Assembly: GCA_004764695.1 (NCBI GenBank)
Contig: SMSO01000035.1
Location: 1,674,001-1,738,000 of the forward strand
Origin: Schizochytrium sp. TIO01
Taxonomy: Eukaryota; Protista; Bigyra: Labyrinthulomycetes
Length of the DNA: 64,000 nucleotides
Direction: 5' to 3'
How positions within the stretch are numbered: the stretch's first letter is position 1; the number at the start of each line of letters is the position of its first letter. The position numbers were made by a program, and so were the translations under genes. The notes beneath the pieces are model-generated. The model was not told the DNA's origin, did not search any database, and was given only the letters and a program-made list of their open reading frames with translations. Shown in pieces: positions 28,198-49,621 of the stretch.

Positions 28198-29691
28198 ATG
28201 AAGTGCACAAATGCACTAGCGCTAGTTGCACTTCTCGTGCAAACAAGTTTCTTTTTTGAGCCTGTACAGAGTGTAACCACAGATACTGATATTTATCTCT
28301 CATTATTGATTGTAGATGAGTCTACTGCTCAAACAAGGCTAACAACCGAGGGTTGCAATGCAACATCTTTGGTGGAGACCACCCTCGGATTAACGAGCAA
28401 TGCGCTTCAGCTCAAGGTTGCAAAGCTTGTCACAACATTGTCGACGCTCGGAATTGAGGCCTCAGACATCGAACTTAATGTTACAAACAGCGTGCTTGAT
28501 ACTACAAACTTGACCTCTTTGGGAACATTACGCTGGTGCATGTTCACACGAGCCTTGACAACCATTAGTAATCTTAACAGCGCTTCAGTTACGGGCACTG
28601 ACACGGCAAGCTTTGACACAAATCTTTTCAGCTTCTTAACTTCCGATGAGAAGAGCTCTTTCGCGGCCTTTAATCCTATCAACATTAGTTATGTCATTGG
28701 TGAAGTGCAGGGTGGACCTCCTACATCTGCTCCGACATCAGCACCAACTAAATCACCTACAGCAAATGCACCTTCGGGAACCCCAAGCCCTACGCACGCA
28801 CCGACTACAAAAGCTACTACAACTCCACCCCCCTCATTTTCTTGGGTTGGCTCCGCGGTTCCTCAAAAAGTGGAGAACCAAGGTCAATGTGGTGGTTGCT
28901 GGGCCTTTTCTGCTGCAGAAATGATTGGTGCCATGGCGTATATTCAGAATGATGATAAATCTTTCACATTGTCCCCGCAGCAATTGGTATCCTGTGATAC
29001 AGACTCTAATGTAAACTCTGGATGCAACGGTGGTAATTACGAGTATGTTTGGGGCGGCTCGAGTGCCTATTCAAGTGATACCGCCCTTGCACTCGCTTCT
29101 AGTTATCCCTTTACAGATGCAACTACTGGAAGTACTTCCTCATGCAAATCAACCCTCGCAAGTGATGGTGTGACATATGCTAGTGGCAACAAGCGCATGG
29201 CAGATGTCATTACGACGAGCGGTATGTATGCAACAAGCACATTACTTCATGACACCCTGCTATCGCACCCCCTCTCGGTTGCAATTTATGTAACAGATTG
29301 CTTTTATAGCTACAGCAGCGGAGTCCTCATGGCAAGCCAATGCTCAGAGGCTATGCAAGCTTCTTCATGTAGTCTGAACCACGCAGTTCTCTTAGTAGGG
29401 TATGGAGGCATGGACACAGATACGCCATATTTTATCATCAAGAACTCTTGGGGAACATCTTGGGGTGAAAACGGGTATGCTCGTCTTGAGATGATTGACG
29501 ACAGCAATCTGAAAGACTCAAAGTGCCGCGGTATGCTTGGAGTTTCGATGATGGCTGCGTACCCTTCTCAAACCTCATTCGAGCAAATACCACCCACCAA
29601 TGCACCAGCGCCGTCAAATGCTATGTCAAACCCAGCATCACTTTTTCTCGCTTTGGCCTCAAGCTTTATAGCACTAGGCTGCTTTGCTTAA
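28198..29691 (+). CDS. Papain-family (C1A) cysteine protease, secreted, probably GPI-anchored; paralog 1
   Basis: Signal peptide, degenerate I29 prodomain (RWCMFTRALTTISNLN...NLFSFLTSDE), QGQCGGCWAFS, LSPQQLVSCD, GCNGG, NHAVLLVGYG, KNSWGTSWGENGY and a hydrophobic C-terminus. Confidence 0.95.
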   Translation: MKCTNALALVALLVQTSFFFEPVQSVTTDTDIYLSLLIVDESTAQTRLTTEGCNATSLVETTLGLTSNALQLKVAKLVTTLSTLGIEASDIELNVTNSVLDTTNLTSLGTLRWCMFTRALTTISNLNSASVTGTDTASFDTNLFSFLTSDEKSSFAAFNPINISYVIGEVQGGPPTSAPTSAPTKSPTANAPSGTPSPTHAPTTKATTTPPPSFSWVGSAVPQKVENQGQCGGCWAFSAAEMIGAMAYIQNDDKSFTLSPQQLVSCDTDSNVNSGCNGGNYEYVWGGSSAYSSDTALALASSYPFTDATTGSTSSCKSTLASDGVTYASGNKRMADVITTSGMYATSTLLHDTLLSHPLSVAIYVTDCFYSYSSGVLMASQCSEAMQASSCSLNHAVLLVGYGGMDTDTPYFIIKNSWGTSWGENGYARLEMIDDSNLKDSKCRGMLGVSMMAAYPSQTSFEQIPPTNAPAPSNAMSNPASLFLALASSFIALGCFA

Positions 29692-30783: not shown

Positions 30784-32805
30784 ATGTTTCACGCAAGTTT
30801 GATAAGAACAGTGATTGCAATTCTTACTTTAATTGCTGGGCATACATACGCAGTCAAGCCTCAGATACAGAACCAATTTTCTATTTTAAGGAGCTCCTCA
30901 GAGTCTTCCCGGCCAGATCGTCTTGATTCACGTAAATTGGGTGTTGATTCGAGCTTATATTTAGCAATTTTACTTATTGGTGAGGATGAAGCTACTGAAC
31001 TTCTTACAAGCGAAGGCTGTGACAGCTTGCTCGACTTAGTTGGCGGATTACTTGGGGGATTACTCAGTACAATTGATGGGACTCTTGCGCTTCTCATAGA
31101 GACACTCATTTCCCTTGGAGTTGACCCTATTGATTTGGGTTTCGAACTAATCGAAGGCACACTCAACCTAAGTATTATCACCTCTGTGACGAATCTTCGC
31201 TATTGTATGTTTGACCGGTCTCTTGATATTTTAAGTGCATTAGAAGACCTCCCCGCCAGTGGAACCGACACTGCACTATTCGGTCCAAATTTTTTCAGCT
31301 TTCTCACCGACGACGAGAAAGATAGCTTTACGGGCTTGGATTCTTTAGCATCTGATCCAAATGGAACTGAATATATCTCAACTTTTGATAACGCAACACG
31401 CCGGCAGCTTGCAGACCCACCTTCAGAGTTCTCTTGGGTGGGAACTGCTGTAGACACTAATATTCAGAACCAAGGTAAGTGCAGCAGCTGCTGGGCATTT
31501 GCTGCTATTGAAACTATATCAGCTCTTGCATATGTTCAAAATGAAAAAGTCACGTATAGTCTTTCTGCACAACAGCTTCTTTCTTGCGAGACAGAATCGT
31601 CAGTGAACAATGGATGCAAAGGTGGAAGCTATGAGTATGTATGGGGTGGCCCCAATCCCTACACAAGTGAGACTTCCCTTGCTTCCAAATCTACATACCC
31701 TTATGTTGACGGTTCTACGGGAACAACGTCCGTTTGTGACGAGACTCTAGAAAACAAAGGTGTTACGTTTGCTACAACCAATGTACGATTGGCAGACAAG
31801 ACTACAGGAAGTGGTCGATATGCTACGACGAGCCTTTTGAAGGAAGTTTTACTCGAACATCCTGTTGCAGTGGCTATATATGCAACAAACTGTTTGTTCT
31901 TGTATAAAAGTGGAGTTCTAAAAGCATCACAGTGCACCGAAGCAATGGACGGTTCAGCATGCCCGTTAAATCATGCCGTTCTTTTAGCTGGGTATGGAGG
32001 TCTTGACACTGACTCGCCATACTTTCTTCTGAAAAATGCATGGGGTATAGATTGGGGAGATGATGGATTTGTTCGGGTAGAAATGATTGCAGACGAAAGA
32101 TTGGAAGATTCATCATGCATAGGTATGCTCGGGATGTCTACCATGCCTGCATTTCCTTCATTTGCAACATTCACCCGTCCCACCTTATCTCCCACAAAGA
32201 GCCCGACAACAACAAAAACACCTACTCTTGCTTCGAGTCCTGTTAGCTCCCCAAGTACGGCCCCTACCTTTGGAACAAAATCTCCTAGTGCAGAAAGTCT
32301 GCCTGTGATAAACTTGCCTATATCTACTTCGCCATCACCTACACTACTACCATCAATCAGTTCAAATACTCATTCCCCATTGGTTTCTCCTTCCACTGAT
32401 GACGAAACCTCGAATATCCCTTCAGCAACATCAACCGGGGTACCTTCTGGTGACTCAGATGCCTCACCAAGTGTAGCTCCAACAAAACTCAAAGGAACAA
32501 GTTTCCCAACAACATCATTAATTTCGCCAAGTTCTGATTATCCATCAAGGCAGCCAACACGGATCCCAACTCCGCAAGCAGACTCAAGCGAAGCTCGCCC
32601 TGTTGGCACATCTCAACCATCAACAAATGTACCATCCTCAAATCAGTCTTCAAGCCCAACATTAAAACCCTCTTCGAATGCAATCATTGCGCCACCTTCC
32701 ACGCCTTCCTCCGCTTCCCGTAACCCGACGCAGATTAACATGTTATCTATGATCATCATTTACATTTTCTCACTGCGAGCTGGCAAATTTGATCACCAAC
32801 ATTGA
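30784..32805 (+). CDS. Papain-family (C1A) cysteine protease with long S/T/P mucin-like tail; paralog 2
   Basis: Signal peptide, QGKCSSCWAFA, LSAQQLLSCE, GCKGG, NHAVLLAGYG and KNAWGIDWGDDGF. About 180 aa of S/T/P stalk precede a hydrophobic segment near the C-terminus. Colinear with paralog 1. Confidence 0.95.
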   Translation: MFHASLIRTVIAILTLIAGHTYAVKPQIQNQFSILRSSSESSRPDRLDSRKLGVDSSLYLAILLIGEDEATELLTSEGCDSLLDLVGGLLGGLLSTIDGTLALLIETLISLGVDPIDLGFELIEGTLNLSIITSVTNLRYCMFDRSLDILSALEDLPASGTDTALFGPNFFSFLTDDEKDSFTGLDSLASDPNGTEYISTFDNATRRQLADPPSEFSWVGTAVDTNIQNQGKCSSCWAFAAIETISALAYVQNEKVTYSLSAQQLLSCETESSVNNGCKGGSYEYVWGGPNPYTSETSLASKSTYPYVDGSTGTTSVCDETLENKGVTFATTNVRLADKTTGSGRYATTSLLKEVLLEHPVAVAIYATNCLFLYKSGVLKASQCTEAMDGSACPLNHAVLLAGYGGLDTDSPYFLLKNAWGIDWGDDGFVRVEMIADERLEDSSCIGMLGMSTMPAFPSFATFTRPTLSPTKSPTTTKTPTLASSPVSSPSTAPTFGTKSPSAESLPVINLPISTSPSPTLLPSISSNTHSPLVSPSTDDETSNIPSATSTGVPSGDSDASPSVAPTKLKGTSFPTTSLISPSSDYPSRQPTRIPTPQADSSEARPVGTSQPSTNVPSSNQSSSPTLKPSSNAIIAPPSTPSSASRNPTQINMLSMIIIYIFSLRAGKFDHQH

Positions 32806-33480
32806 GGCAGCTAGGGAAATTGCTATTTCTAAAACAAAATGTTCTTGATATTTTCTCTTCATGAAGAGTTATTTCTTTCGTAAAACCTAACATAAAAGCG
32901 AACAAAAATAAATACATTCTCTCTGATTATCAATTTCGCATTTCCCAAAATTCAATTTGCTCAACTTTGTCCTAGTAAAGTACCATTTTGAAGCTACTGC
33001 CGAACTATTATTTTTTAAATTAAATATACAGGGAGTCCCAGTAGTTCTTGTTAGACCTAGATACATAGACTATCGAAAAAACTCTTTTTATTTTTATTAT
33101 TTTCGTAATTTAACATTTAATACAAGTTTTGAAACACTGTTAACGGATTTCCGTTCTGTAAGGGCACTCTGCTTATTGTTTTCGTCTCAGTTTCTGAGAC
33201 CTTGCTATCCCACTTTGACCTAGCTTTCAAGAGCAGGATTCTCAAGCGCTCTAGGCAGTCCAAGGTCGTCTCTTTATGGGCCATGATGGATTCTGATGAG
33301 CGAGCGAACAACTTTGAAGCCTTTGCAGGGAGAAACTGTTCTGCATGGCTTAATCGTGAAGAGCAACGCTGGGACCCACAATGTTCAGGACAGCGAGGTC
33401 AAACTGATCAGGAAACCAACAATCGAAAAGCGTCATGGCCAAGGACTGCGAACACCACCCGTCGATTATATTGGAGACCA

Positions 33481-36400
33481 ATGTCTGCACATTCTAATTT
33501 CTGGGTTGCTCTTTTTTATTTTATTCATATGGCTTGTATTTTTCGGACAGTGACCAGCACTACACCAAGCATGAATAGCGCGACTTTAGATCTCAGCACA
33601 GCGAATTTGATAATATATGTTGCAAATATTGAAAGCGTTCATAATGCAACCTTGGTGAGTTTTATTCGTCAAGATACAAGTGCAAAGTATTCACATTAAA
33701 TGATATGAAGGATATGTCTGTGGATACATCAGGCAGCACCGTTTCTGCAACGATGACAGCACAACAACAGTACCTAATATATCAAGCCAGCAACACCGAT
33801 TCAACTAGCATCAATGTAGCTGCAGAGGCTGCTGCATTCTATGGAGTAGGAGATGAACCAAACGAACAAAACCAACTCACAGCAACAATAAATTCAGACA
33901 CCACTGGGCCTTCACAATTAAATCAAGCTACTCTCAATCTCAACACAGGGATCTTAATGCTCCAGTTTCAAGAGTACGTTGATGCATCAACATGGAATGG
34001 TACTCTCGTACAGATATCAGGAGATACTATAACCGCAAACCTTTCCACATCAGATACAGAAGGAGATTCGACGGTGGATGAATATTTAATCATAACATTG
34101 ACTGAAGGTCAGCGCAGCAGCCTCTCCGCATATGCTGCTCAAAATGGCATACTAGCTGTGACAGTCTTTCCTGCTGCCATCAAAGATCTCGCAGGAAACA
34201 GCAACGCCCAAATCGAATCTTATATGATTAATCTCACCCAAGATAGCACCGCCGCCACCGCGAGTAGTGCAGCACTGGATCTGAATGACGGAATATTGAC
34301 CATTACATTCAGTGAGTATGTGGATGCGAGCTCTTGGGATTCATCGTTGGCGACAATCACCAATTCTGATAGCTCCTATTCTGAGACGCTTGACGGAGCG
34401 ACGCTCGATGACTCTACCACGGATGCTATCTTGACAATCCAGCTCTCAGAAGATCAAAGGTCAGCATTGAGTGCTGAAGATGCAGCAAATGAGACCTTGA
34501 CGCTCACCATCACGAGTGGCTTTGTCAAAGACTATGGTGCTGTGAGTTGCGCTGGTGGCTCCGCAAGCATGACGGTGACAAGTGATAGCACCGCCGCCAC
34601 CACGGGTAGTGCAACACTGGATCTGAATGACGGAATATTGACCATTACATTCAGTGAGTATGTGGATGCGAGCTCTTGGGATTCAACCTTGGCGACAATC
34701 ACCAATTCTGATAGCTCCTATTCTGCGACGCTTGACGGAGCGACGCTCGATGACTCTACCACGGATGCTATCTTGACAATCCAGCTCTCAGAAGATCAAA
34801 GGTCAGCATTGAGTGCTGAAGATGCAGCAAATGAGATCTTGACACTCACCATCACGAGTGGCTTTGTCAAAGACTATGGTGCTGTGAGTTGCGCTGGTGG
34901 CTCCGCAAGCATGACGGTCACAAGTGATAGCACCACCGCCACCGCGAGTAGTGCAGCACTGGATCTGAATGACGGTACATTGACCATTACATTCAGTGAG
35001 TACGTGGATGCGACCTCGTGGAATTCAACCTTGGCGACAATCACCAATTCTAATAGCTCTTATTCTGCGACGCTTGTCGGAGCGACGCTCGATGACTCTA
35101 CCACGGATGCTATCTTGACAATACAGCTCTCAGAAGATCAAAGGTCAGCATTGAGTGCTGAAGATGCAGCAAATGAGATCTTGACACTCACCATCACGAG
35201 TGGCTTTGTCAAAGACTATGGTGCTGTGAGTTGCGCTGGTGGCTCAGTAACCATGGCGGTCACAAGTGATAGCACCACCGCCACCGCGAGTAGTGCAGCA
35301 CTGGATCTGAATGACGGAACATTGACCATTACATTCAGTGAGTACGTAGATGCGACCTCGTGGAATTCAACCTTGGCGACAATCACCAATTCTAATAGCT
35401 CTTATTCTGCGACGCTTGTCGGAGCGACGCTCGATGACTCTACCACGGATGCTATCTTGACAATCCAGCTCTCAGAAGATCAAAGGTCAGCATTGAGTGC
35501 TGAAGATGCAGCAAATGAGATCTTGACACTCACCATCACGAGTGGCTTCGTCAAAGACTATGGTGCTGTGAGTTGCGCTGGTGGCTCAGTAACCATGGCG
35601 GTCACAAGTGATAGCACCGCCGCCACCGCGAGTAGTGCAGCACTGGATCTGAATGACGGAACATTGACCATTACATTCAGTGAGTACGTGGATGCGACCT
35701 CGTGGAATTCAACCTTGGCGACAATCACCAATTCTAATAGCTCCTATTCTGCGACGCTTGACGGAGCGACGCTCGATGACTCTACCACGGATGCTATATT
35801 GACAATCCAGCTCTCAGAAGATCAAAGGTCAGCATTGAGTGCTGAAGATGCAGCAAGTGAGACCTTGACACTCACCATCACGAGTGGCTTTGTCAAAGAC
35901 TATGGTGCTGTGAGTTGCGCTGGTGGCTCAGTAACAATGACGGTCACAAGTGATACGACAAACCCAGAAGTGACGTTTGCTAAGTTGGATCTGAATGTTG
36001 GTTTACTAGAACTTAGTTTCGACGAATATGTTAATTTTAGTTCTTGGAATAGTGCTGGACTAACATTCTCGACTGGGAGTTATTCAGGTAGTTTGTCATA
36101 TGGCAAATTGAGTAACGTTAGTGAGGGCGATACTATGGGAATTGTTTTGTCTGAATCTCAACGGGTAGTTCTTGCTACAGAAAAGAACCAATCTAGAAGT
36201 GTTTCTGTCGTTATATCCAATACGTTTGTTGCAGATTTTGGTAGAAATTTTAATATCGCGAGCAATGTTGTTGCTTCGACTTTGGCAGACAGTACATCAC
36301 CACGGCTGAGAAATGCTAGCCTCGACCTTAACGATGGGATGTTGATCCTTGTATTTAATGAGACCATCGATACATCTGCGTGGGACCGTTCAAAAGTAAC

Positions 36401-39400
36401 GGTGTATAGCGGCGAATACTCTTCAGAGATTTTACTCGGTACGACCTTGGCTAGCAGTTCCTCTGAGAAGACTGTAATTTTGAATTTGGTAGAATCACAG
36501 CGATCAGCGTTGTCCAGTCAGGTAGCCAATGGGGAAGAGGTGGGAATTTCTCTTTTGAAAGGATTTTGTAGCGATGTGGTTGGGAATCTCAACACCGTGG
36601 CTAATCTTACGATTATCTCGACACCTGACAGTTCAAGCTCGCAACTAGTATCGGGGGAGCTTGATCTCAACAATGGCACTTTAACTCTTACTTTTAATGA
36701 ATTTGTTAATGCTTCACTCTGGCAGGCCGCAGAAGCAACAATTTCTAGTGATAGTTATTCTGGTACATTAGAGAATTCTATTTTAGATGATCAGACCGTG
36801 GACTATTCAGTAGTTATAGTCATTCCTGAAGCACAGAGAGCGGAATTATCAGCTGTTGCGGCCGAAGGAAGTGCGATCAATATTTCAATCTCAGCTTATT
36901 TTATCCAGGATTATGGTTTGGTGTTTAATGACGCTGGGACTATAAGTCTGTCCCTTACAATGGACACAACAATTCCTGTGATTTCTTCAGTATACGTGGA
37001 TTTGAATGATGGACTGGTTAATATTTCATTTTCTGAATATATAAATGTTTCAACATGGAACGGCACTCAGGCGTTGATGGTTTCGAGCGATTATGCTGGG
37101 GATCTTAGTAATGCAAGTATATCTTTAGCAGAAACAGTCGACGATCATCTTCTTCTTGTTCTGAGTGAGCTGCAAAGGTCAAAACTATCTGCAACAGCCG
37201 CAGCCTCATTTGAAGTTGTTGCTAGATTTCAGAATGGTTTTATAAGCGACTATGGGCACAACTTAAATGAAGGTACCAATATAACAGCAGGGATGAATCT
37301 TGATACGACTCCACCAACAAGCTTATCAGTTATTCTGGACCTGAATTACGGCATCTTGGAAATTCTTTTCAGCGAATTTGTTGACCTCACAACTTGGCAT
37401 GGCGCATTAGTTTCGCTTCAAAGCTCAGGTTTGAATAAATCCTTAGAAGGGACCTCAACTATTGTGCAGTCATCTCAGGAACTTGTGGCTGTTGTTCTAC
37501 AAGAGGCAGATAGATCAGTGTTAGCTTCTGTAGTTGCTTCTAGCCAGTCTATATCGCTTCATGTATCAGTAGGTGCTATTAAAGACTTTGGAGGAATCAA
37601 CTCTACTTTATCTTCTCTAGAAGTAAATTCTACTGCAGACACTAAGCCCCCGACGATTCAAAACTCCACGTTGAATTTAAATGATGGTCGTTTGGTTATA
37701 CAGTTTGACGAGTATATCATTATGGAGACCTGTAATTTGTCACAGGCTACAATAGCGTCTGATAACTACTCATCATCTCTTGATAGTGCTACATTTGATG
37801 AAACTTCTTCAAATGGTACTGTTGAGATCGACCTATCTGAAGAGCAAAGGTCGGTATTAGCTGAGAAAATGGTGAGCGGTTTTTCTATCTCTGTCACACT
37901 TTCAGCAATCTTTGCAACAGATTACGGCGAAAACTATAATACAGCTGGAACCATAACTGTAGCCGCGATCCCAGACACAAGAGCACCTGTATTCTCTAGT
38001 GCTGAGCTTAATTTGAATACTGGTGTTCTTCAGTTAGAGTTCAGCGAGTTTGTAGATCCAATCAGTTGGAATGGAACTCAGGTAAATATCTCTACAATTG
38101 AATTTGCTGGAAACTTGGAAGACGCAACGATGAATAGTTACTCCACTGGCTACTCCATTACACTTACTTTATCAGAATCTGAGCGATCAAGCTTGTCTGC
38201 AGAAGTTGTAGCAAACAATTCAATTGAGTTAACATTGCTTTCTGGATTTATTCTTGATTCAGGAAATAATCCAAACATGATTGGAAGCATGAATGTGTCA
38301 ACCCTAGCAGATACAACAAAACCAAACCCCTTATCTGCAGCCATAGATCTGAACAATGGAGAACTTACAATATCTTTTGATGAGTTTATGGATGCAGCAA
38401 CATGGAACGGATCTCTCATTGTTCTTTCGTGCAGCAATTTTTCTTCGTCTTTGATCGAGAGCAGCCTAGATGACACAGCTACTGATGAAATACTGAAAAT
38501 CAAATTAAGTGAGTCGCTTCGTTCCGTTTTTGCAGAATACAACGCTGCTGGGGAGACAATAAATCTGGACATTTCCCCAAGTTTCGCTCGGGATTATGGT
38601 AATAATCCGTGTACAGGGTTGACTTCGATTGCAGTATCTGCTACAGCCGATACCACGCCTCCTGGAGCAACGCTTGGGGAAATGAACCTCAATGATGGTA
38701 CCATCGTTGTTACATTTGATGAATTCGTTGAATATTCTACTTGGAATGGAACAGAGGTAAATCTTATCGATGGGAACTATAAAATGGCGCTAACAACAGC
38801 AACTTTGGAGACTAGCATCCAAGGCTATGAGATTCGTCTGCTCCTCTTAGAAGATAGCCGGTCGGAGCTTGCAGGCTTAGATAAGAACGGAGGAGTCTTC
38901 TCAATGCAACTCTCAAATATTGTTATTACTGACTCAGCTGGAAATTATAATAGTGCTAAAATCATACCGATGAACATATCACATGATTCTACCTCTCCAG
39001 CGTTAAGCTCAGGTATGCTTACTTTAAATACAGGACTCCTGTATCTTACGTTCTCCGAGTATATTCCTACCAAATACTACTGATTTCAATAACCTAGAGC
39101 TTATCAGCGGAAACTATTCTACAGCAGGGAATGTGCCTGTACTTGTAAGCAACGCAACGAATTTCACAGTGGGATTTCGTCTTCAAGAAGCAGAAAGATC
39201 TTTAATTGCCAGGGCAACTCTGGCTGACCCAACCGTGTTCATCAATATTTCTTCAGCATTTGTTCAAGATTCTGCTTCGAATGGCAACTTGGCTAATTCA
39301 TCAGAGATGCAGCTTGCACTCGATGATCTGCCGCCATATATCATGCAGAGTCACCTTAATTTGGAATCTCGAACGCTTACTCTGGTGTTTTCTGAGTATC

Positions 39401-42400
39401 TGTATCCTGGGTCTGGGAACATTTCGCGTGTGGAGCTGCAAACAGTGGACTCTGCATTCATCATTGGGCTTGATTATATCCTAGAAAGTAGTGCTCAGTC
39501 AGACATGGGTGAAAGTTTCATCTGGTTGGTAACACTTTCCCCTGAACAGCAGGTGGAATTGATATCTCACTCAGTTAATGCCGCCGAGAATATTACAATT
39601 ACTATGTACTACGAAGCTGCAATCGACTATGCGGCCAATCCTGTAGACGAAACGACTTTGGTTCTTAATGTGACTGCTGATTCAACAAACCCAATTGTGT
39701 ATAGTACAACTCTGAACCTTGCAACAATGGAATTAATTGTGAACGTTTCTGAGTTCGCTAATGTAGTTGACCTTTCACTCGCTACTGTACAATCAACATC
39801 TCTCGAAAAGATTGGAGTAGTTTCGACTAAACTCTACTCCGGTTTGACGAAAGTTCAGCTTTTTTCAAATACCTTAAAAGACGAAGTAACGTATGCATAC
39901 CTGGATGGAAGTTCTTTAACTTACTCTTTAGATGGTGGAGCTTTCGAAGATACCGCTGGGAATCAGCTAACTGCAACAGGGTCCCAAGCCTTCAGTATTG
40001 TGTATCCTGATGAACTTTATCCTACGATCACTTATGTGGAAGTTGATCTCGGTTTCAAGACCGTCACTATTGTTACAAATGAGACTGTGAAAAATGTTAG
40101 CTGGGGTGATTTTGCGCTACAAAACTCTGACACTTCTCAATCAGTTGTTTTAGACACGATTCAGGATCATACAGCGAATGTCACCCATACATACACTATG
40201 TCAGAAGCTGTACACCTAGCGGCATGCTTAATTACACCTGCAATTCAGAGCATTGCCGTTCAACAGAATGCACTCTATGATCTTTCTTCCAATCCTGTTG
40301 AAGCAGTTAGTGCACAGTTAGTAGACCGTATCATCTTGGACACTGTTGCCCCTGTAGTCCAAGCAGATTCAATTGTCCTTAATCTTGCCACCGGGCGCCT
40401 TATTTTCAACGTCTCGGAGCATATTGTAGTAGAGTCTGTTAGCCTTGAATATTTCACCATTGTTGCTATCGATGATGCCTCCACATTTGTATTAGACCCG
40501 TCATATAGCAATGTTGTAACATCAGATGAATACTCAACCCAGCTAGTTGTTGATATTGAGGTTGCAAGCCGAGTCTGGTCAGTCATTGCTGATAAACGAG
40601 GCAGCGATCTTTCTATTCAATTTCTAGAAGCAGCGTTTTCCGACGTCTCTGGAAATGCAAATGTTCCACAAACAGTATCGATTACGCAAGTATTCCCCGA
40701 TGATGTTAATCCAACAATTACATCCGTTGATCTCAATCTGAATACAGAGATCCTCATTATCGAATTTTCTGAACCTGTTAATGTGACCCGCCTTAATACA
40801 TTCGCAACATTGACTAGTTCCTTGGAGGTACAAACTGCTCTAGGCAATGCAATTCCATTTGAAATGGCCGGAGCGGCGTATGGTAGCCCTGCAGAGTTTT
40901 CATCTAAAGTTTATTTCCCAATTGCGGAAGTTTCCTCTAGACGTTCGATGAATATAGCAGCCTTATCAACATCTACGTTTTCTCTTTCTTACACTGCTAA
41001 TACATCCCTTTTTCTAGATGCTGCCGACAACATCGTGGAAGAACAATCTGAAAGTTATAATGTGAGTACACTCACCCTCGATTCAACATCACCTATTATT
41101 GAGAGTATCAACATTGAGATAAAGAATGGTCGCGTTATTTTCTACGGAGACGAGACTCTGGATCCCGCGCAATTGGATCCGTCCAAAGTTCTTGTGGAAA
41201 ATTTGCTACATCTTGATTCCGCAGAGTGCGCTATCCAGAATGTTGATACGCTCTCTTTGAATAACACGTTTGTAATGTCCGATCCACAAATTGCGTTATA
41301 TCTTCCTTACATGGATAATGCGAGTGACGTTCAAATTTACATTCTTCCAGGAGCTGTCGCAGATGTAATGGGAAATAAGAACTCAGAAACATTTGAGTTT
41401 GTGGTACCTCCAGATCCTACCTACTTTGAGACACGGATTATATCTGTAAACTTTGAGCAAATCGTCAGGGGCGCAAGCAAGTCAATTGAATTTGTTGGAA
41501 CGGGATTAATTGCTGGCCAAACTGCAAAATGGGTCCAGGGAAGTAGCTGCTCAGACACTGGTGTCTCAGTCAACACAGATTCTGAATCGATTACAGTCGA
41601 TACTGAAACATACAATGTAGGCCCATACAAAACCATTGCACAAGTCATTAGTTTCGATGTCGAGTCTGATCCAACACCTTTCGTGCTTTGTTATCAGTCT
41701 GAGCTAGTGTCTGACTGGATCATGACAGTATTTGCAGTTCAGGTAATGACGCAAAATAGTGGAGCAAGTGATCATATTGTTGTTGGTGTACCAAAGACTC
41801 AAACCTTTTCTGGTGTTGGAGTAAGCACTGGGGATCGAGTTAAATGGGTTGAATCGGAAGACGACTGTGATGAGACACTAACACCTTTGAACCAGATCCC
41901 ATCCATCGCTGCAACATTGACAGCATCTTTGCGAGCTGTAAGTGTTCAAATTGGGCCCCGTGTTGATGGTCAGTTGGTGCCGAGAAATCTAACACTTTGT
42001 TACAAGTTTAATTCCGAGCTATTCTTCTACTTTTCGGAGTTCACTTTGACTGTTCATCAAATCACAGAAATGAGTAACTCTGATCGTTTAGTGGTTGCTC
42101 AAAACAAAACACTAAGTTTTGAAGGAATTAATGTAGAGCCTAGCCTTGATCGAATCGTCTGGGTTGAGGCACTACAGTCAACATCTGATGATCATTGCAA
42201 CACAAATAGCACCCGATTAGGGATTTCGCCCACAGCTGAACTTAAAGGATATCTCAACGTTTCTGTCTCGATCGATGCAGCACCACTCCCTGAACGAGAA
42301 TATTCACTATGTTATGGTTTTCAAGATGAACCTCTGCGCCTATATTCAGGGATTACGTTGACAGCTTGCGAGGTTGTAACTTATAATGTTTCGCAGGGAA

Positions 42401-45400
42401 GTGTTCATGTAGCCGTCCGCGACGTCCCCAAGACCTTCTACTTTCATGGTAGTGGATTCGATAGCGACCTTGACCGGATCACTTGGACTACTGATGCGCA
42501 AGATTCATCATCATGTGAAAAGTTCGCAGGGACTATAGCTAGTGCAAATATAGGATCACAGTATTCAACTGGTTACGGGCCTTTAACATTTGATGCAACT
42601 GCAAACATGGTGTATCTTTGCTACGGATTTGGTAGCTCTGAGCCTTGGCAGATCTATCCAAACGTTTATCTTCAGGTGCGCGCTGTTGATAGTGCAAGCC
42701 CGAATCGCACAATTGCTCTATTATCTCCACCTGAGGTAATCACTTTCTATGGTCTAGGACTAATGGCAACTGACCGGGCGAAATATGTACCTCAATTGAA
42801 TTCTCTCAGCGGTACGGAGTTATGCCTACTGGACACAAGTCATGGGACCACTATCACAGCAACTCTCGGTCCAGTGAGTGTAGGTGCAATGATTGCAGTT
42901 CAATTCCCACAAATTACTAGTAATCTTCCATACGTTTTATGCTATGCGCACGAAACTGAACCATATGCAATCTATGAAACTATCGTCATGGAAGCTGACG
43001 GCTTAATAAGTATGTCGCCTACAGAGTTCGTTGAGGGCTTGCCATATGAAGTTAGTTTCGATACTGTTGGTCTTGAGGTTTACGACGTTATTCGATTTAT
43101 GTACTTGAAAAATGGAGAGGATGCAAGCACATTCACGGATGCAATGTGCGAAACAGCAGATATTGCGTATGAAGTTGTGGTTCAAGATGTTGTCTCTGAC
43201 ACGTTGACATTTCCACAAAGAACACCATCTGATACAGAAGAACACCCAGTATGCATCTTATTTAAACGCAACATGATGGCCCAACGACAAAAGGCATACT
43301 CCTTAGGTGTGCGCGCTCTTGGAATAGAAAGTGTCAATCTCGATCACGCTGTTGTCGGTAATAATTCTACATTTACCTTTACAGGAACTGGTATCCAGGA
43401 AGGTGATCTCGTTAAATGGGTATCCGCTGATGAAGTAAGCACCTATGAAGATTGTGAAAGCGCGACAAGCTTGTCAGAATCCAATTATGGTGAAGAGATG
43501 GGTGCTGACCGCACATTGGATATTTCTTTTCTTGAGGGAACATCTAGCGCGGTACTCTGCTATCGATTCAAAAACCATCCATGGTATAGGCTTTATAGCA
43601 ATATTGAGCTTGTTGTCAATCATGTACGAGATGTCTCGCTGCATCACGCAATTTCAAATTCGCCACAAACTTTCGTCTTGGATGTAGCTTTTGTTCAAGC
43701 TGGAGATCGGGTTCGCTTTATTCCTTCAAACAGCTCATGTGAAAGTGAGTTTGACAAACAGACATACGCGATTACTATTGTGACGTGTGAACAGAGAGGA
43801 AGCATCTTAGCGGGATTGCTTTCCCCATTTACCAATGAATGTGCTCAGATCAGAGCAACATTCACACAGATTCCTGCAATAAGTTCCAGTCTAGTTTTGT
43901 GCTATAAGTTTGCTGCAGAGACTACCTATACTAAGTTTCCTGCTCTAACTGTGCATGTGGTAGCCCCTACGATCAGTGCACAAGATTCTTCTTTCTTCGT
44001 CTCAGGAGTGGCGAAGACGTTACAGCTTACAGGTTCATTTGGCCTCACAACCGGGGACGCATATAAATTTGTTGCATATGACACAACCTGTTCAAATGAT
44101 ACGGCCACACTTTCCTCTGTATCCACGAGCTTAATCGGTTCTGACTCAGGTCTGGTAAGTGGCTCGGCAAGTGTTATCGTCAGTATCAACGTAGGGGAGG
44201 TAGATGATGCAGACCTCTTGAAGTTCCGGCCATACAGGTTATGCTACCGCTTCGGTTCACAAGGCCCACTCCTTATGTACAAAGAACGTAGCCTCTCTGC
44301 GATGAAATTGACAAAAGTGCTGCTAGCAACACGTCCAGATAGTGTTGTGGCTGGCTCCAATGTCGTATTCGAGTTTCATGGCCTTGGAGTAGCAGACAAT
44401 GACCAGGCAAAATGGGTAGCTCACGGTAACTTATGTAGTGCTGATGGAGTTGCAGGATCCGAAGCCGCCACGGTGTCTGAACAGCGCGCCACATTTCGGT
44501 TTTCAAGTGCTGCTTCAAATATGTTGCTCTGCTACAAGTTTAATGATGAACCGTACACGTCCTATCCTTCGTTAACCATTGGGCAAGTTGAATATAGTGA
44601 AATGGTTGTTGACACTTCAAGTGACTTGTCAACTTCTGGATCCTCGTCCACAGTAGATACAGCTCTTAGTGCTGCAGAGGAAGTGTCGAGCAAACTTGTC
44701 GATGAGCAATCTACAATCGATTCAAAGCTTCAGAAGGAAGCACACATTCAGATTTCATTAGATCTCAGCTACGAGACAGTCCCACCGGGTTCGGTTGCAG
44801 AAACAAACTTTATTGCAAACTTTACAGGCGCAATGGGGAATGCTCTTGGAATAGCCGCCGATCGAGTAAGGGTAATGGACCTTTACAGTGGGTCTATTAT
44901 AGTGTACTTCATTATTCTCCCACCTTCCTCCGAAGACGATACGCTTCCAGCAGAGGCCGCGGCGGCAATTCTTTTAGAAAAGGTGATGGAAACAACTAGT
45001 ACAATCTTTTCAGCACCGAGTGTGTTGAACTTTGTAAAGCAGGATGTTGCGATTGAAGTTGTGTTAATTGAGAATAAAGATGCTCTTGCAAATGCAAACA
45101 ACACTGCATCAGCACAACTATCTCAGCAACAAACAGAATTGTCTATCTCGTCATACCTTCAAAGTGGACTTGTCTTGTTCCAGGATGCAGTTAAAGTTGT
45201 TGTTGAGAAGTTTGACTCATATGTTGATCTGTATGTCATCAGAGAACACGGGACATACGGAACCGTACCTGTTGAGTTTAGTACCCGTGATGGTACAGCA
45301 ACAGCCTCAATCCATTATACCAAAACCTCTGGGCTCCTCAGATTTATGGACGGCGAGCAAAACAAAACAATTCGTGTTCCAATTTTGCGAGACGAAGCTG

Positions 45401-46923
45401 CAGGGCCACCTTTCCGATGGTTTGTAGTAGACTTGACCCTTGGATTTACACAGTATGCTGCAAAGCTAGGAACTCGAAAGACGGCTTTGGTAAAAATCTT
45501 CGACTATGGCGATGGCGAAAGCATTGCCAGTGACTCATTCGCGATCGATTCTGGAACGAGTCAAGAGACGAATGGATGGACTGTCTCTGGAAATCAAATC
45601 GATCAACAAAGCGCATGGGTGGACACATACGGGTTATTCAGTGTTGACCAGCTATATGCTAGTAATGAGTACAATGACCGCTGTGATTTCGCAAGCACGA
45701 TTGGACCCTGTACTTATTCCTGTACCTATGGCGGAAGCTATACATTGACTTCAGGATATGATGATGGCGTTCTTGAGCTCTCGAATTCAGATGATTCGTA
45801 TGTTGCGTCAAAGGATGTTTGGGACATGTCCTTGAGTTCTGGGTTCACAATATCCTTTTGGTTGAAAGTTAACGTCAACGAAGAAACCATGACAGGTCGA
45901 GAAACTATTGCTTCGTATCAGATCACCGGTCAAAGTGGTTTATGCGAAATTGCTTTAGTGAACCCCCGCGATCTGACGCTTGTTGTTCATGGACGTTTAA
46001 ATAGCAACATTGAATTTGGTGAGAATTCTGGATTAGATTTGACAGATGGGAAATGGCATTTCGTTGCAGTGACGTGGCGGTCAGCAGGCGGCGAGGTCAA
46101 TTTCTTTGACAATGGAGTTCTTGTCTGGGAAGGGGGTCCCCTGCAAGCAGATTACTCAGTTCAATCTGGCGGATCCTGGGTCATAGGTCAAGCCCAAGGA
46201 GCCGAGCCTTGCTTTGCTGGGACGAGCTGCTCATTTGTTGCCGGAAGAACTTTCGCAGGAAGTTTACAAAACTTCCGTGTCTGGAATGAAGCTCGATCCC
46301 AAGTTCAAATTGAAGGAGGTATGCGGTGGCCTTTTACCCTTTATCAAGGTTCGTTACGTCTGTATTGGCGTTTCCGTGTTGGAGATGCTCTTAATCATGT
46401 GGTGAGCAACAGTGCCTTGGCTGGGGCAGACCATGACGGTTTACTTGGCTCGCAAGCGAGTATCGAGGATGGTAGTCCGAGTGCTTCTCGTAATTACCCA
46501 TGTGGACAGGTGAATTTCAACACAATGTATTTTGAGGCGCCCGAAAGATATCTTGGAGACTTGAGCGAGGTTTATAATGGGCGTTTGCAGTTCGAGCTAT
46601 TTTCTCCAAGTCAACATGGCTCGGCACGAGACACACGTGGTGCAGTGATTTTAGAAGGCAATGGACTCAGGATTTCAAACTCACTGGTGGGCTTTCCAAT
46701 GACAGTACAAGGTGGTGGCTGGCGGGGCTTCTCTGTTGTTTTGCAGGAAGATCATGGCTGGCATCTTGAGCCAGAAGGTACATCCGCCAGTTTTTCGGCC
46801 TTTTGGAGCGTCCTCCGCAATGTAACTCGCATTGGAATTCGGGGAGATCTTATGGTGTACTCCCGTCAGGGCTCTGGACAAGAAACGACATATCTGAATA
46901 ACGTCGCCTTAGTGAAGGCTTAA
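33481..46923 (+). CDS. Giant secreted multi-repeat adhesin/matrix-like protein (~4480 aa), interrupted in this sequence by two frame changes (~33690 and ~39066)
   Basis: ATG 33481 starts a signal peptide (MSAHSNFWVALFYFIHMACIFRTVTS). The repeat consensus DxTxP..LDLNxGxLxxxFxExV..DxxGN continues in register across both ORF breaks. C-terminal SEA-like, Calx-beta, pentraxin/LamG and laminin-IV domains. Confidence 0.8.
34242..35951 (+). repeat. Intragenic tandem repeat, 5 x 342 bp (114 aa), near-identical
   Basis: Units start GATAGCACC at 34242, 34584, 34926, 35268 and 35610; similarity breaks down just after 35952. Confidence 0.97.
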
Positions 46924-47648: not shown

Positions 47649-48257
47649 TTACTTCTCGCCAACCTTTGGTGGGGTGAGAATTGCTAGTCCTGTCTCCTTA
47701 AATTTGACAAAGCGTTCTGCTTTGCGCTTTAAATACCCTGTCGGATGCTGGTAAACGTTAAGTTTGGTATCACGTAACATGGCCTGGTAATCTGTGCCGT
47801 ACTTCTCCACGAGAGGACCAATGAAGAGGCAATCCTCCTCGCTCATCCAATGAGGTGGACGGCGACGTTCGTTAAGGCCGTGATGCGTGAGAGCAGTTTC
47901 CTGATCCACATCCTTATCTGTAATGGATTTCTCAAGAATTTCTGAGACCTTGGGGCCTTCTACATTGAAGGCTTCTTTTCTCGACTTTTTCACGGCCTTG
48001 GGCTCGGCTGTTGTGTCTTTGCGCGACCGCTTCGTGGAGGGAGCACCATCTTTGTCAAATACCGTGGGCTCAATGCCGGACACCACAGCATTGGGGTCTG
48101 TGGTGAGGCCAAAACTTTGGTAATTTTCATTCAGAGTACCGCGTTTCCATGCCTGGCGGACCACCTCGTTGCCTTTGATACGTGTGACACGCTTATCCTT
48201 AGGCTTGCGGGAGACCTTAGTGCCCCTTCGCTTCAAGTTCTTGCCATAGCCAGGCAT
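47649..48257 (-). CDS. NOP16: Nucleolar ribosome biogenesis protein NOP16
   Basis: Basic N-terminus, W..GTLNENYQSFGLTTDPN and LVEKYGTDYQAMLRDTKLNVYQ match the Nop16 motifs; first ATG at 48257. Confidence 0.9.
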   Translation of the reverse strand: MPGYGKNLKRRGTKVSRKPKDKRVTRIKGNEVVRQAWKRGTLNENYQSFGLTTDPNAVVSGIEPTVFDKDGAPSTKRSRKDTTAEPKAVKKSRKEAFNVEGPKVSEILEKSITDKDVDQETALTHHGLNERRRPPHWMSEEDCLFIGPLVEKYGTDYQAMLRDTKLNVYQHPTGYLKRKAERFVKFKETGLAILTPPKVGEK

Positions 48258-49621
48258 CTTGCACAACTAGAAACCTCTGAGACTAAAATAAAAGCTCCAG
48301 ACTCTCCCAGACAGATTCAGGTTTGTCTTGCCTAAGCAATCAATGACGTCCTCTCTCAATCACGTTTGGCCTTTTCACGAGCGCGCTTTCGTGTCAAGGT
48401 TTGACTGCAGACAAGAACTCGTAGTCTCGTGGCCACTCCTCTGCCACCACCAAGCCATTGTTAACTCTATTGTACACATCATCTCCTTCAATTCACCCTT
48501 CGTAGGTTACCTAGTACAAACATTACTGATTAGAAAGAAATAAAACTATGCTAGGCTATTGCCATTATTTCCTCTATGACCCCCATTCAACCGGCCATCT
48601 AACTGTTATCCAAACATGATTGGGGTTATAGAGGGTGTTTCGGTAGAAAGCATATTATGGGTTTCTGCGCTGTTTTAGTTTTAGAGAACTAAAAATTGGA
48701 TTGAGAAGGCCATCAATGTCGAAGCCAGGACCTTCACAATCGCCAACACACAAAATCAGTCAGACTGAATTTTTGTTTACAAGTGCATAGCTCTAGGAGG
48801 CAGTCTAGACGGAGAAATATGTGGCTCTCCTACCATAGCGTCTTTAAAGAACAGAGTATAGGTAGCACAGAAGAACTTGCGTTGTTTGAGAGCGGCGGTC
48901 ACTGTGCACTTGTGTAGTCTTTTTTGGGAGGTAATCCAAGCTTCATGTTCGAAACGGCAGCTCTCAACAATTGCGTGCACTGAAGGGTTGGAGTGGATTA
49001 CAGCTAACAATCTTACATTTTTCTGTGTGATCCTGCGGTACTTGGTACTGTGTTCATATGCACCTGAGCATTACAAGCCTTCACGGCGAATTATGGGTCC
49101 CAATCTGCTCCTCTAAGGCCAAGCAAGCCTCGTCTAAAACAAATTGCCGCGAAGCAAGCAAAACCCAAATCACATCTGTCGCCCACGTAGTATAAACTAG
49201 CCACAAGCTATCAGTGAAAACATCGCAGCAGCACTGTGTCTTGATCTGCGTTGCTTTGCCACCTAACCCTGGTGCTCAGCGTGCTTGCGGCTTCGTAAGT
49301 TTGAGCTTGAAGGATTCTGCTTTGCTTTGCTGATCTTTATCCCAATCTCGAGACCATCGTCCTATTAGATAGCTATTAGTGGGCACTCCTACCTAATCAG
49401 GTAGGTAGGTAGGTACCTACTACGCGCTAGCTAGTTCCAGGCTAACTACCGGGTCCCAGCAAGTCGCCTTTCCTGCCTTTGCAAGTAGAGTATACCTTCT
49501 CACAGTGAGTTATAGGATTTGGGGAAAGTAGACCAATTGTTTTATACAAGAGCCTGAGGAGAGTAAATACGGATATACGCGGTTTATCTGGAGCAAGCAA
49601 GGGAAATTGCAAATACAAAAG

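Follow-up and report, generated by a model that had tools for sequence, protein, structure and literature searches.

Positions 33481–46923 of a 64,000-nucleotide stretch of the genome of the thraustochytrid Schizochytrium sp. TIO01 (contig SMSO01000035.1; the whole stretch is referred to as the window) hold one two-exon, single-copy gene, which encodes one giant, modular, probably secreted protein. The protein runs from a predicted signal peptide, through a long rod of repeats and a Ser/Thr-rich linker, to a SEA-type domain (a fold that structure prediction makes likely) and a C-terminal head composed of Calx-beta, pentraxin-type and laminin IV domains. By sequence comparison, the Cys-containing part of the rod and everything downstream of it are conserved as the C-terminal core of a family of stramenopile proteins, with members among thraustochytrids, oomycetes and marine eukaryote transcripts. 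We consider that the protein as a whole is best explained—with a probability of roughly 0.6—as an unanchored fibril of the surface or matrix, which binds through a lectin-like head and carries a self-cleaving SEA joint between stalk and head.

One gene across three open reading frames

Three open reading frames (ORFs; 33202–33699, 33705–39083 and 39133–46923) are present in the window on the + strand. The start codon, ATG 33481, shares its frame with the third ORF, and the middle ORF is out of frame with both. If left unspliced, the frame that begins at ATG 33481 hits a stop at 33697–33699. An earlier interpretation, made from the DNA letters alone (the sequence-only reading), held that the three ORFs conceal one giant secreted protein, and counted 4481 codons from ATG 33481 to stop 46923. 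The first claim is borne out by the gene model below, in which an intron and one spurious base (39066) reconcile the frames. The second is correct as a span (13,443 nt) and incorrect as a protein length, because the frames differ. The gene model consists of the following elements (slashes mark exon boundaries):

33481–33654, + strand: exon 1, with the start codon, the signal peptide and the start of a diverged Ig-like repeat 1 (from the sequence and its translation)
33655–33710, + strand: predicted intron of 56 nt, G/GTGAGT...GAAG/G (in silico; acceptor AG at 33709–33710)
33711–46923, + strand: exon 2, a single open frame once base 39066 is disregarded, with stop TAA at 46921–46923
39066, + strand: spurious extra assembly base behind the break between the ORF ends 39083 and 39133, left out by four of four sequencing runs

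The first break is accounted for by the predicted 56-nt intron, which would restore the frame to the signal-peptide exon. Positions 33655–33710 are bounded by the sole GT-AG pair that brings ATG 33481 into frame with the ORF beginning at 33705, and position 33711 falls in that frame. In addition, the diverged repeat 1 aligns through the splice junction (NATL/DMSVDTSGS against GATLD--DSTTDA). A second candidate acceptor, at 33732, would give a 78-nt intron; it was ruled out on account of a wrong frame and early stops.

The second break has a different origin. Base 39066, which sits in a TATATTCCTACC context, is omitted from the contigs of four runs from four studies (X15, X17, X18 and the DNA run X5) over positions 36000–41999, and no joint is present in any of the four across these 6 kb. 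Run X5 may itself be the source of the TIO01 assembly, and it too lacks the base. Once the base is removed, the frames ending ...LTFSEYI and beginning LPNTTDFNNLE... fuse into one normal repeat (FSEYI-LPNTTDF). Since all four runs omit the base and show no joint, the second break is an assembly error, and neither a frameshift mutation nor an intron. An intron at this position (GT 39013 paired with AG 39097 or 39124) would agree with the frame; it would, however, cut out a conserved repeat core, and we rejected it because four of four runs show a 1-base deletion at 39066 and no joint.

The corrected coding sequence is 13,386 nt long, contains no internal stop and encodes 4,461 aa followed by the stop codon. 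The length of ~4480 aa given by the sequence-only reading is thus replaced by 4,461 aa after removal of the 56-nt intron and one base; together these make up 57 nt, or 19 codons, which is the source of the excess in the 4481-codon count. The spliced, base-corrected protein was used for coordinates, repeat hidden Markov models (HMMs) and composition; searches and folding used unaltered pieces. Stop TAA 46921 is followed by AT-rich sequence, and relatives terminate at the same position, so the C-terminus is complete. A search of the species' own genome (a 64-Mb, 37-contig assembly, in which repeat counts are lower bounds) returned no paralogs: the Ig repeats, the Cys repeats and the head are confined to the giant gene.

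The N-terminus, MSAHSN-FWVALFYFIHMACIF-RTVTS, resembles a signal peptide, as do the N-termini of complete family members. Its hydrophobic run consists of 15 residues and is followed by Arg. No 19-residue stretch with a mean hydropathy above 1.6 was found anywhere in the protein, and the C-terminus is polar, not hydrophobic. The predicted mature chain is ~474 kDa with an isoelectric point (pI) of 4.1, and N-x-S/T sequons are enriched (73, versus 53.8 +/- 6.2 in shuffles). Judged by these properties, the protein is probably secreted and carries no membrane anchor.

Stalk, SEA-type domain and head

The protein is divided into the following parts, in the same order as had been listed in the sequence-only reading:

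33481–33564, + strand: signal peptide, aa 1 to ~28, with h-region FWVALFYFIHMACIF (sequence and translation)
33565–41421, + strand: 23 Big_5-type Ig-like repeats with a period of ~114 aa, aa 29–2628 (iterated HMM, alignment)
34242–35955, + strand: recent tandem expansion of 5.0 copies of 342 bp, one Ig-like repeat per unit, 97% identity (Tandem Repeats Finder)
41443–44601, + strand: 10 Cys repeats of ~100–116 aa each, aa 2636–3688 (HMM: nine, plus one diverged copy)
44602–44718, + strand: acidic Ser/Thr-rich linker, aa 3689–3735 (36% S+T, 19% D+E)
44719–45129, + strand: likely SEA-type alpha/beta domain, beta-alpha-beta-beta-alpha-beta (predicted secondary structure; family-wide conservation)
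44890–44895, + strand: candidate SEA-type autoproteolysis site, Gly3785-Ser3786, SG-SIIVYF, in the beta2/beta3 turn (motif and model)
45154–45513, + strand: Calx-beta, PF03160 (Pfam, 49 bits; fold agrees)
45514–45756, + strand: conserved interdomain segment with the three-Cys motif C-D-x-A-x4-P-C-x2-S-C-x-Y-G-G (family consensus)
45757–46488, + strand: pentraxin-type jelly-roll, LamG superfamily (Laminin_G_3, 53 bits; Pentaxin, PF00354, 30.8 bits; fold agrees)
46519–46920, + strand: laminin IV (Laminin_B/L4, PF00052) at the extreme C-terminus (Pfam, 51.7 bits; fold agrees)

Several structural claims of the sequence-only reading stand. These are (i) the ~23 N-terminal repeats of ~110–120 aa, (ii) the 10 Cys repeats, (iii) the missing transmembrane or glycosylphosphatidylinositol anchor, for which no hydrophobic stretch is available beyond the N-terminus, and (iv) an acidic stalk that is probably N-glycosylated, as suggested by its pI and sequon enrichment. 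HMM support for the C-terminal domains was obtained in part: it extends to Calx-beta, pentraxin/LamG and laminin IV, and it does not extend to the SEA-like domain, for which predicted topology and motif speak in favor.

The rod is probably made up of 33 Ig-like domains: 23 repeats that resemble Big_5 in sequence, and 10 Cys repeats whose predicted fold is weakly IPT/TIG-like. The Big_5-type repeats are recognizable by the motifs LDLNxGxLxLxFSExV, LSExQRS and DxxGN, and in eight repeats of the stalk a WN-x-[ST] sequon occupies one conserved alignment position. Pfam Big_5 (PF13205) matches a 1,790-aa piece with 69.4 bits, as many weak stretches none of which passes singly; it also matches five of 18 single repeats (best E 1.8e-4). 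A search of PDB sequences with the Ig-repeat profile gave no match. Distant relatives of the stalk (22–26% identity) are large unnamed proteins, several of which carry PF13205, including one from the stramenopile Triparma. The Cys repeats are defined by xKTxxFxGxGxxxGDxxKWV, a Cys at a variable position and an invariant LCY, giving two Cys per repeat. Structure was predicted for a single Cys repeat only, as MAFFT had mixed the Ig and Cys types in the composite alignment. The model bears a weak resemblance to the IPT/TIG (PF01833) fold, and Foldseek returned nothing for it at E <= 0.001.

The 342-bp tandem array is GC-richer than its flanks. The contig of run X15 begins right after the array, and the copy number of the array may therefore differ from strain to strain or be uncertain as assembled. 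Over positions 36000–41999, the four runs reveal 36 single-base differences among strains, of which 25 are non-synonymous and 11 synonymous (a ratio of non-synonymous to synonymous polymorphism per site, pN/pS, of ~0.7). With the exception of 39066, no stops or indels were found among strains in this interval.

These observations bear on the possibility that the locus is decaying or mis-assembled: its three ORFs might be separate, it might be a pseudogene, or its repeats might have been collapsed or expanded. The two frame breaks in the window, the 97%-identical array of 5 x 342 bp that no short-read contig crosses (with the X15 contig starting just after it), and the stalk pN/pS of ~0.7 would all be in keeping with such a history. 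However, the 39066 break is absent in four of four runs, the other break has the form of a canonical GT-AG intron, strains differ by no stops or indels over 6 kb, the head is well conserved, and an ortholog that is itself a transcript is collinear over 2,452 aa. We therefore regard decay or mis-assembly as largely refuted and very improbable.

The last 737 aa were aligned with 22 relatives, and their structure was predicted with AlphaFold2 (mean predicted local distance difference test score, pLDDT, 80.9). At the N-terminal end of this piece (head residues 4–140), the model shows the elements E9-20, H29-46, E53-59, E62-69, H81-93 and E116-121, mostly with a pLDDT of 74–88. Between strands 53–59 and 62–69 lies the sequence G-S-[IV]-[IV]-V (then x-F), which is present in 13 of the 15 family members that span the region. 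SEA domains of the MUC1 type (G/SVVV) and dystroglycan (G/S) cleave themselves at such a motif and position during folding. The model makes a SEA fold likely, and analogy makes self-cleavage at Gly3785-Ser3786 plausible. An Atlas feature match to a SEA cluster, at 0.83, is weak and serves as a lead only.

The assignments of the Calx-beta, pentraxin-type and laminin IV domains are strongly supported by Pfam and by fold comparison; the Pfam scores of Calx-beta, Laminin_G_3, Pentaxin and Laminin_B all exceed the curated cut-offs. The interdomain segment at 45514–45756 ranks with the most strongly conserved parts of the family (55% identity to the thraustochytrid ortholog) and is modeled partly with low confidence (pLDDT <50 at head residues 318–349). 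Fold matches to the laminin IV-like region of perlecan (9i5a) and to laminin L4b (4yep) begin at model residues 77 and 268, upstream of the pentraxin domain. Hence, the laminin IV sandwich may borrow strands from 45514–45756, in which case the pentraxin domain would be an insertion. No Laminin_EGF or EGF match was found by Pfam in either protein piece.

The sequence-only reading described the head as Ca-dependent, for which we find no support. The residues that we take to be the Ca2+ ligands of NCX1 calcium-binding domain 1 (CBD1) are mostly replaced in the alignment (GSDY by SIHY, IIDDD by ILRDE), and the CBD1 EEDE stretch falls outside the aligned part, where the window reads AAGPPFRW. Similarly, the pentraxin Ca loop, GQEQD in neuronal pentraxin, reads GQAQG, such that both acidic ligands are lost. 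The pentraxin signature H-x-C-x-[ST]-W-x-[ST] is also broken: WHHICITWTT is changed to WHFVAVTWRS, with Cys replaced by Ala.

A stramenopile family and its proposed function

A search with the 737-aa head query covered 1.84 billion cluster representatives. About 14 representatives align to query residues ~4–736 in a single stretch that ends a few residues from their own C-terminus, and the Pfam domain order is the same in the relatives' heads. An HMM built from the Cys repeats of the window finds 1–12 copies preceding the head in each of 15 members of the family, the oomycete ones among them (2–12 in all except one short entry). The named oomycete members are from Plasmopara halstedii (XP_024575440.1), Phytophthora aleatoria (KAG6964868.1), Pythium oligandrum (TMW60184.1) and Globisporangium ultimum (K3WAF2); further members are found in MMETSP, in EukProt and in catalogues of marine eukaryotes.

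Conservation increases toward the C-terminus. Identity to the thraustochytrid ortholog (P0001, an MMETSP transcript that is collinear with the protein, at 40% identity over 2,452 aa) rises from ~30% in the Ig stalk to 40% in the Cys array, 46% in the SEA-type domain and 48–55% in the head. In comparison with oomycetes, identity is highest in laminin IV (~40%), the SEA core (~38%) and the three-Cys segment (34–38%). Among the family members examined, the Ig stalk is present only in the thraustochytrid ortholog; the N-terminal parts are lineage-specific and, across the family, read as a mosaic of different modules. In one short member, a signal peptide is followed by three Cys repeats and then the head, and by nothing else. 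Another member (P0054) has a kringle domain (residues 742–809) in an otherwise unrelated N-terminal part.

Searches of the literature by domains, organism groups and member accessions found no paper describing the family, and a study of the zoospore and vegetative proteomes of Aurantiochytrium (PMC12221091), with its supplements, mentions none of these domains. The roles put forward in the sequence-only reading, as a component of the ectoplasmic net, the wall or a zoospore adhesive, are thus candidate roles only. The statement that the architecture is not a named one therefore holds for the literature searched, and fails insofar as the core has automatically named oomycete members (e.g., 'Laminin IV type A domain-containing protein').

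In the explanation that we prefer, the protein would form a fibril outside the cell, roughly 130–150 nm in length (assuming ~4 nm per Ig-like domain). The stalk would be a fast-evolving, lineage-specific spacer, and the C-terminal lectin-like head the sole conserved globular binding unit. As the protein lacks an anchor, this head would fix it to the cell surface or wall, or would grip a substrate; binding would probably rest on the recognition of carbohydrates, without use of the canonical pentraxin or CBD1 calcium sites. The occurrence of G-S-[IV]-[IV]-V at the beta2/beta3 turn suggests that the SEA-type domain probably undergoes self-cleavage like that of MUC1 and dystroglycan. Stalk and head would then be two non-covalently joined subunits, separable under force. 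The design would be mucin-like, with a lectin head standing in for the membrane anchor. More tentatively, and at well below even odds, we suggest that giant secreted proteins of this family, across the stramenopiles, could use a self-cleaving SEA joint between a lineage-specific rod and a conserved head as a force-releasable tether, by which thraustochytrid cells or oomycete cysts would attach to surfaces.

The same head could point the other way. If the N-terminal hydrophobic segment were an uncleaved signal anchor (type II), the head would be held out ~130 nm beyond the plasma membrane or ectoplasmic net, and would bind prey, detritus or substrate, much like the giant Ig-repeat adhesins of bacteria. 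This possibility is in keeping with the head being the most conserved part, with the lack of any other anchor in the protein, and with many of the top sequence matches being giant bacterial Calx-beta repeat proteins; an extender followed by C-terminal ligand modules is also the layout of giant bacterial adhesins. However, the hydrophobic run is only 15 residues long, is followed by Arg and lies below the hydropathy threshold for a transmembrane segment, and the signal peptides of oomycete and short members of the family are of an ordinary kind that looks cleavable. We consider a membrane-attached protein of this kind quite unlikely.

Alternatively, the protein could be a bulk acidic glycoprotein of the wall or scales, or of the zoospore or cyst coat, in which the head mediates self-assembly or cross-links wall polysaccharides with no specific adhesion. 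A very acidic, Ser/Thr-rich and sequon-enriched composition would suit this role, as would stalk repeats that are weakly constrained and recently expanded. It is also known that thraustochytrid walls are rich in protein, and that the groups that have the family in common have encysting zoospores. Against this, the gene is single copy, and the head is conserved though oomycete and thraustochytrid walls differ chemically. A bulk coat protein thus strikes us as unlikely.

We prefer the mucin-like fibril with the head as its anchor over both of these alternatives. Several points weigh against that preference. Firstly, the sequence is compatible with all three, and with a head that anchors as well as with a head that is a distal tip. 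Secondly, the 56-nt intron, and hence the join to the signal peptide, is predicted in silico only. Thirdly, the stalk pN/pS of ~0.7, calculated from only 36 sites, points to weak constraint on the stalk. Fourthly, the SEA piece and three relatives gave no Pfam match (PF01390) at E values of up to 10, and the SEA piece gave no match among PDB sequences. Fifthly, the canonical Ca2+ ligands of the Calx-beta and pentraxin domains are largely absent. Finally, the runs guessed to be RNA consist of contigs, and one of these, X15, looks like DNA; expression in TIO01 is thus only a possibility. The X15 contig is 16.8 kb long, has a depth of 150 and, by arithmetic, continues ~5.8 kb beyond the stop of the giant gene and through the opposite-strand neighboring gene; X15 is probably DNA rather than RNA. 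Runs X17 and X18 cover the giant gene in short pieces at a depth of 3–6, which is compatible with, and no proof of, low expression. For the thraustochytrid ortholog, expression is demonstrated by the MMETSP transcript P0001.

As for the surroundings of the gene, long ORFs (>=150 aa) are sparse in the window, and no tRNA genes were found in its 64 kb; both observations fit a eukaryote. Directly upstream are two papain-family (Peptidase_C1) genes on the + strand, at 28198–29691 (497 aa) and 30784–32805 (673 aa). Downstream, a Nop16 ribosome-biogenesis gene (47649–48266, - strand) lies ~700 nt past the stop codon and marks the 3' limit of the locus.

Both thraustochytrids and oomycetes attach themselves to detritus, prey or hosts, and few surface molecules that serve this purpose are known. 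The gene described here provides a concrete, single-copy attachment candidate in a genetically tractable protist. As its C-terminal module is common to plant-pathogenic oomycetes, a function learned once could transfer across the group. Pentraxin, laminin IV, Calx-beta and the SEA-type joint are usually discussed as inventions of the animal extracellular matrix, and the family bears on the age and spread of these modules. To our knowledge, the self-cleaving SEA joint has so far been considered a feature of animal cell surfaces (mucins, dystroglycan); if the more tentative tether reading is true, SEA autoproteolysis and the pentraxin, laminin IV and Calx-beta modules were already combined outside animals. 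The new elements reported here are the family core, the conserved SEA-type G-S-[IV]-[IV]-V motif and the loss of most canonical Ca ligands. The locus is also a case in which a one-base error splits a giant gene in a public assembly.

Comparison with known systems

The closest counterparts are oomycete proteins annotated as 'Laminin IV type A domain-containing protein' or 'Concanavalin A-like lectin/glucanase, subgroup', which are true homologs whose alignment to the 737-aa query forms a single stretch. They share with the protein (i) a signal peptide, (ii) Cys repeats (1–12, with one in the short K3WAF2), (iii) the SEA-type domain with GS[IV][IV]V, and (iv) Calx-beta, pentraxin-type and laminin IV domains at the extreme C-terminus. 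They differ in sequence, with an identity of 23–40%, and in their N-terminal stalks, which bear no relation to the 23 repeats of Big_5 type. No function has been described for them in the literature searched.

Giant bacterial adhesins (RTX/BIg-type) also have tens of Big-type Ig-like repeats as an acidic extender and a cluster of lectin-like modules at the C-terminus; Big_5 is itself a bacterial Ig-like family. In contrast, the protein described here is a eukaryotic secretory protein with a predicted intron and N-glycosylation sequons, and has neither an RTX/type 1 secretion signal nor an outer-membrane retention domain. The likeness would seem to be one of design, rather than of demonstrated descent.

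Among adhesion G protein-coupled receptors, ADGRV1/VLGR1 combines Calx-beta repeats with a pentraxin/LamG domain, and ADGRG6/GPR126 and ADGRG4 contain a pentraxin domain (with SEA in GPR126). The Schizochytrium protein, on the other hand, lacks the GAIN and seven-transmembrane domains, and has a single Calx-beta and an additional laminin IV domain; the relationship is a domain-level likeness, not orthology. The L4 domains of animal laminin and perlecan are inserted in a laminin-EGF (LE) module, whereas here there are no LE/EGF matches and laminin IV is C-terminal.

With MUC1-type mucins and dystroglycan, the protein has in common a long glycosylated rod (here predicted), a Ser/Thr linker, and a SEA-type domain with G-S-[IV]-[IV]-V at what is here a predicted beta2/beta3 turn. 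It differs from them in that the rod is built of folded Ig-like domains and not of Pro/Thr/Ser repeats, in that the SEA-type domain has no Pfam SEA match, and in what follows the SEA-type domain: a Calx-beta/pentraxin/laminin IV head, in place of a transmembrane anchor.

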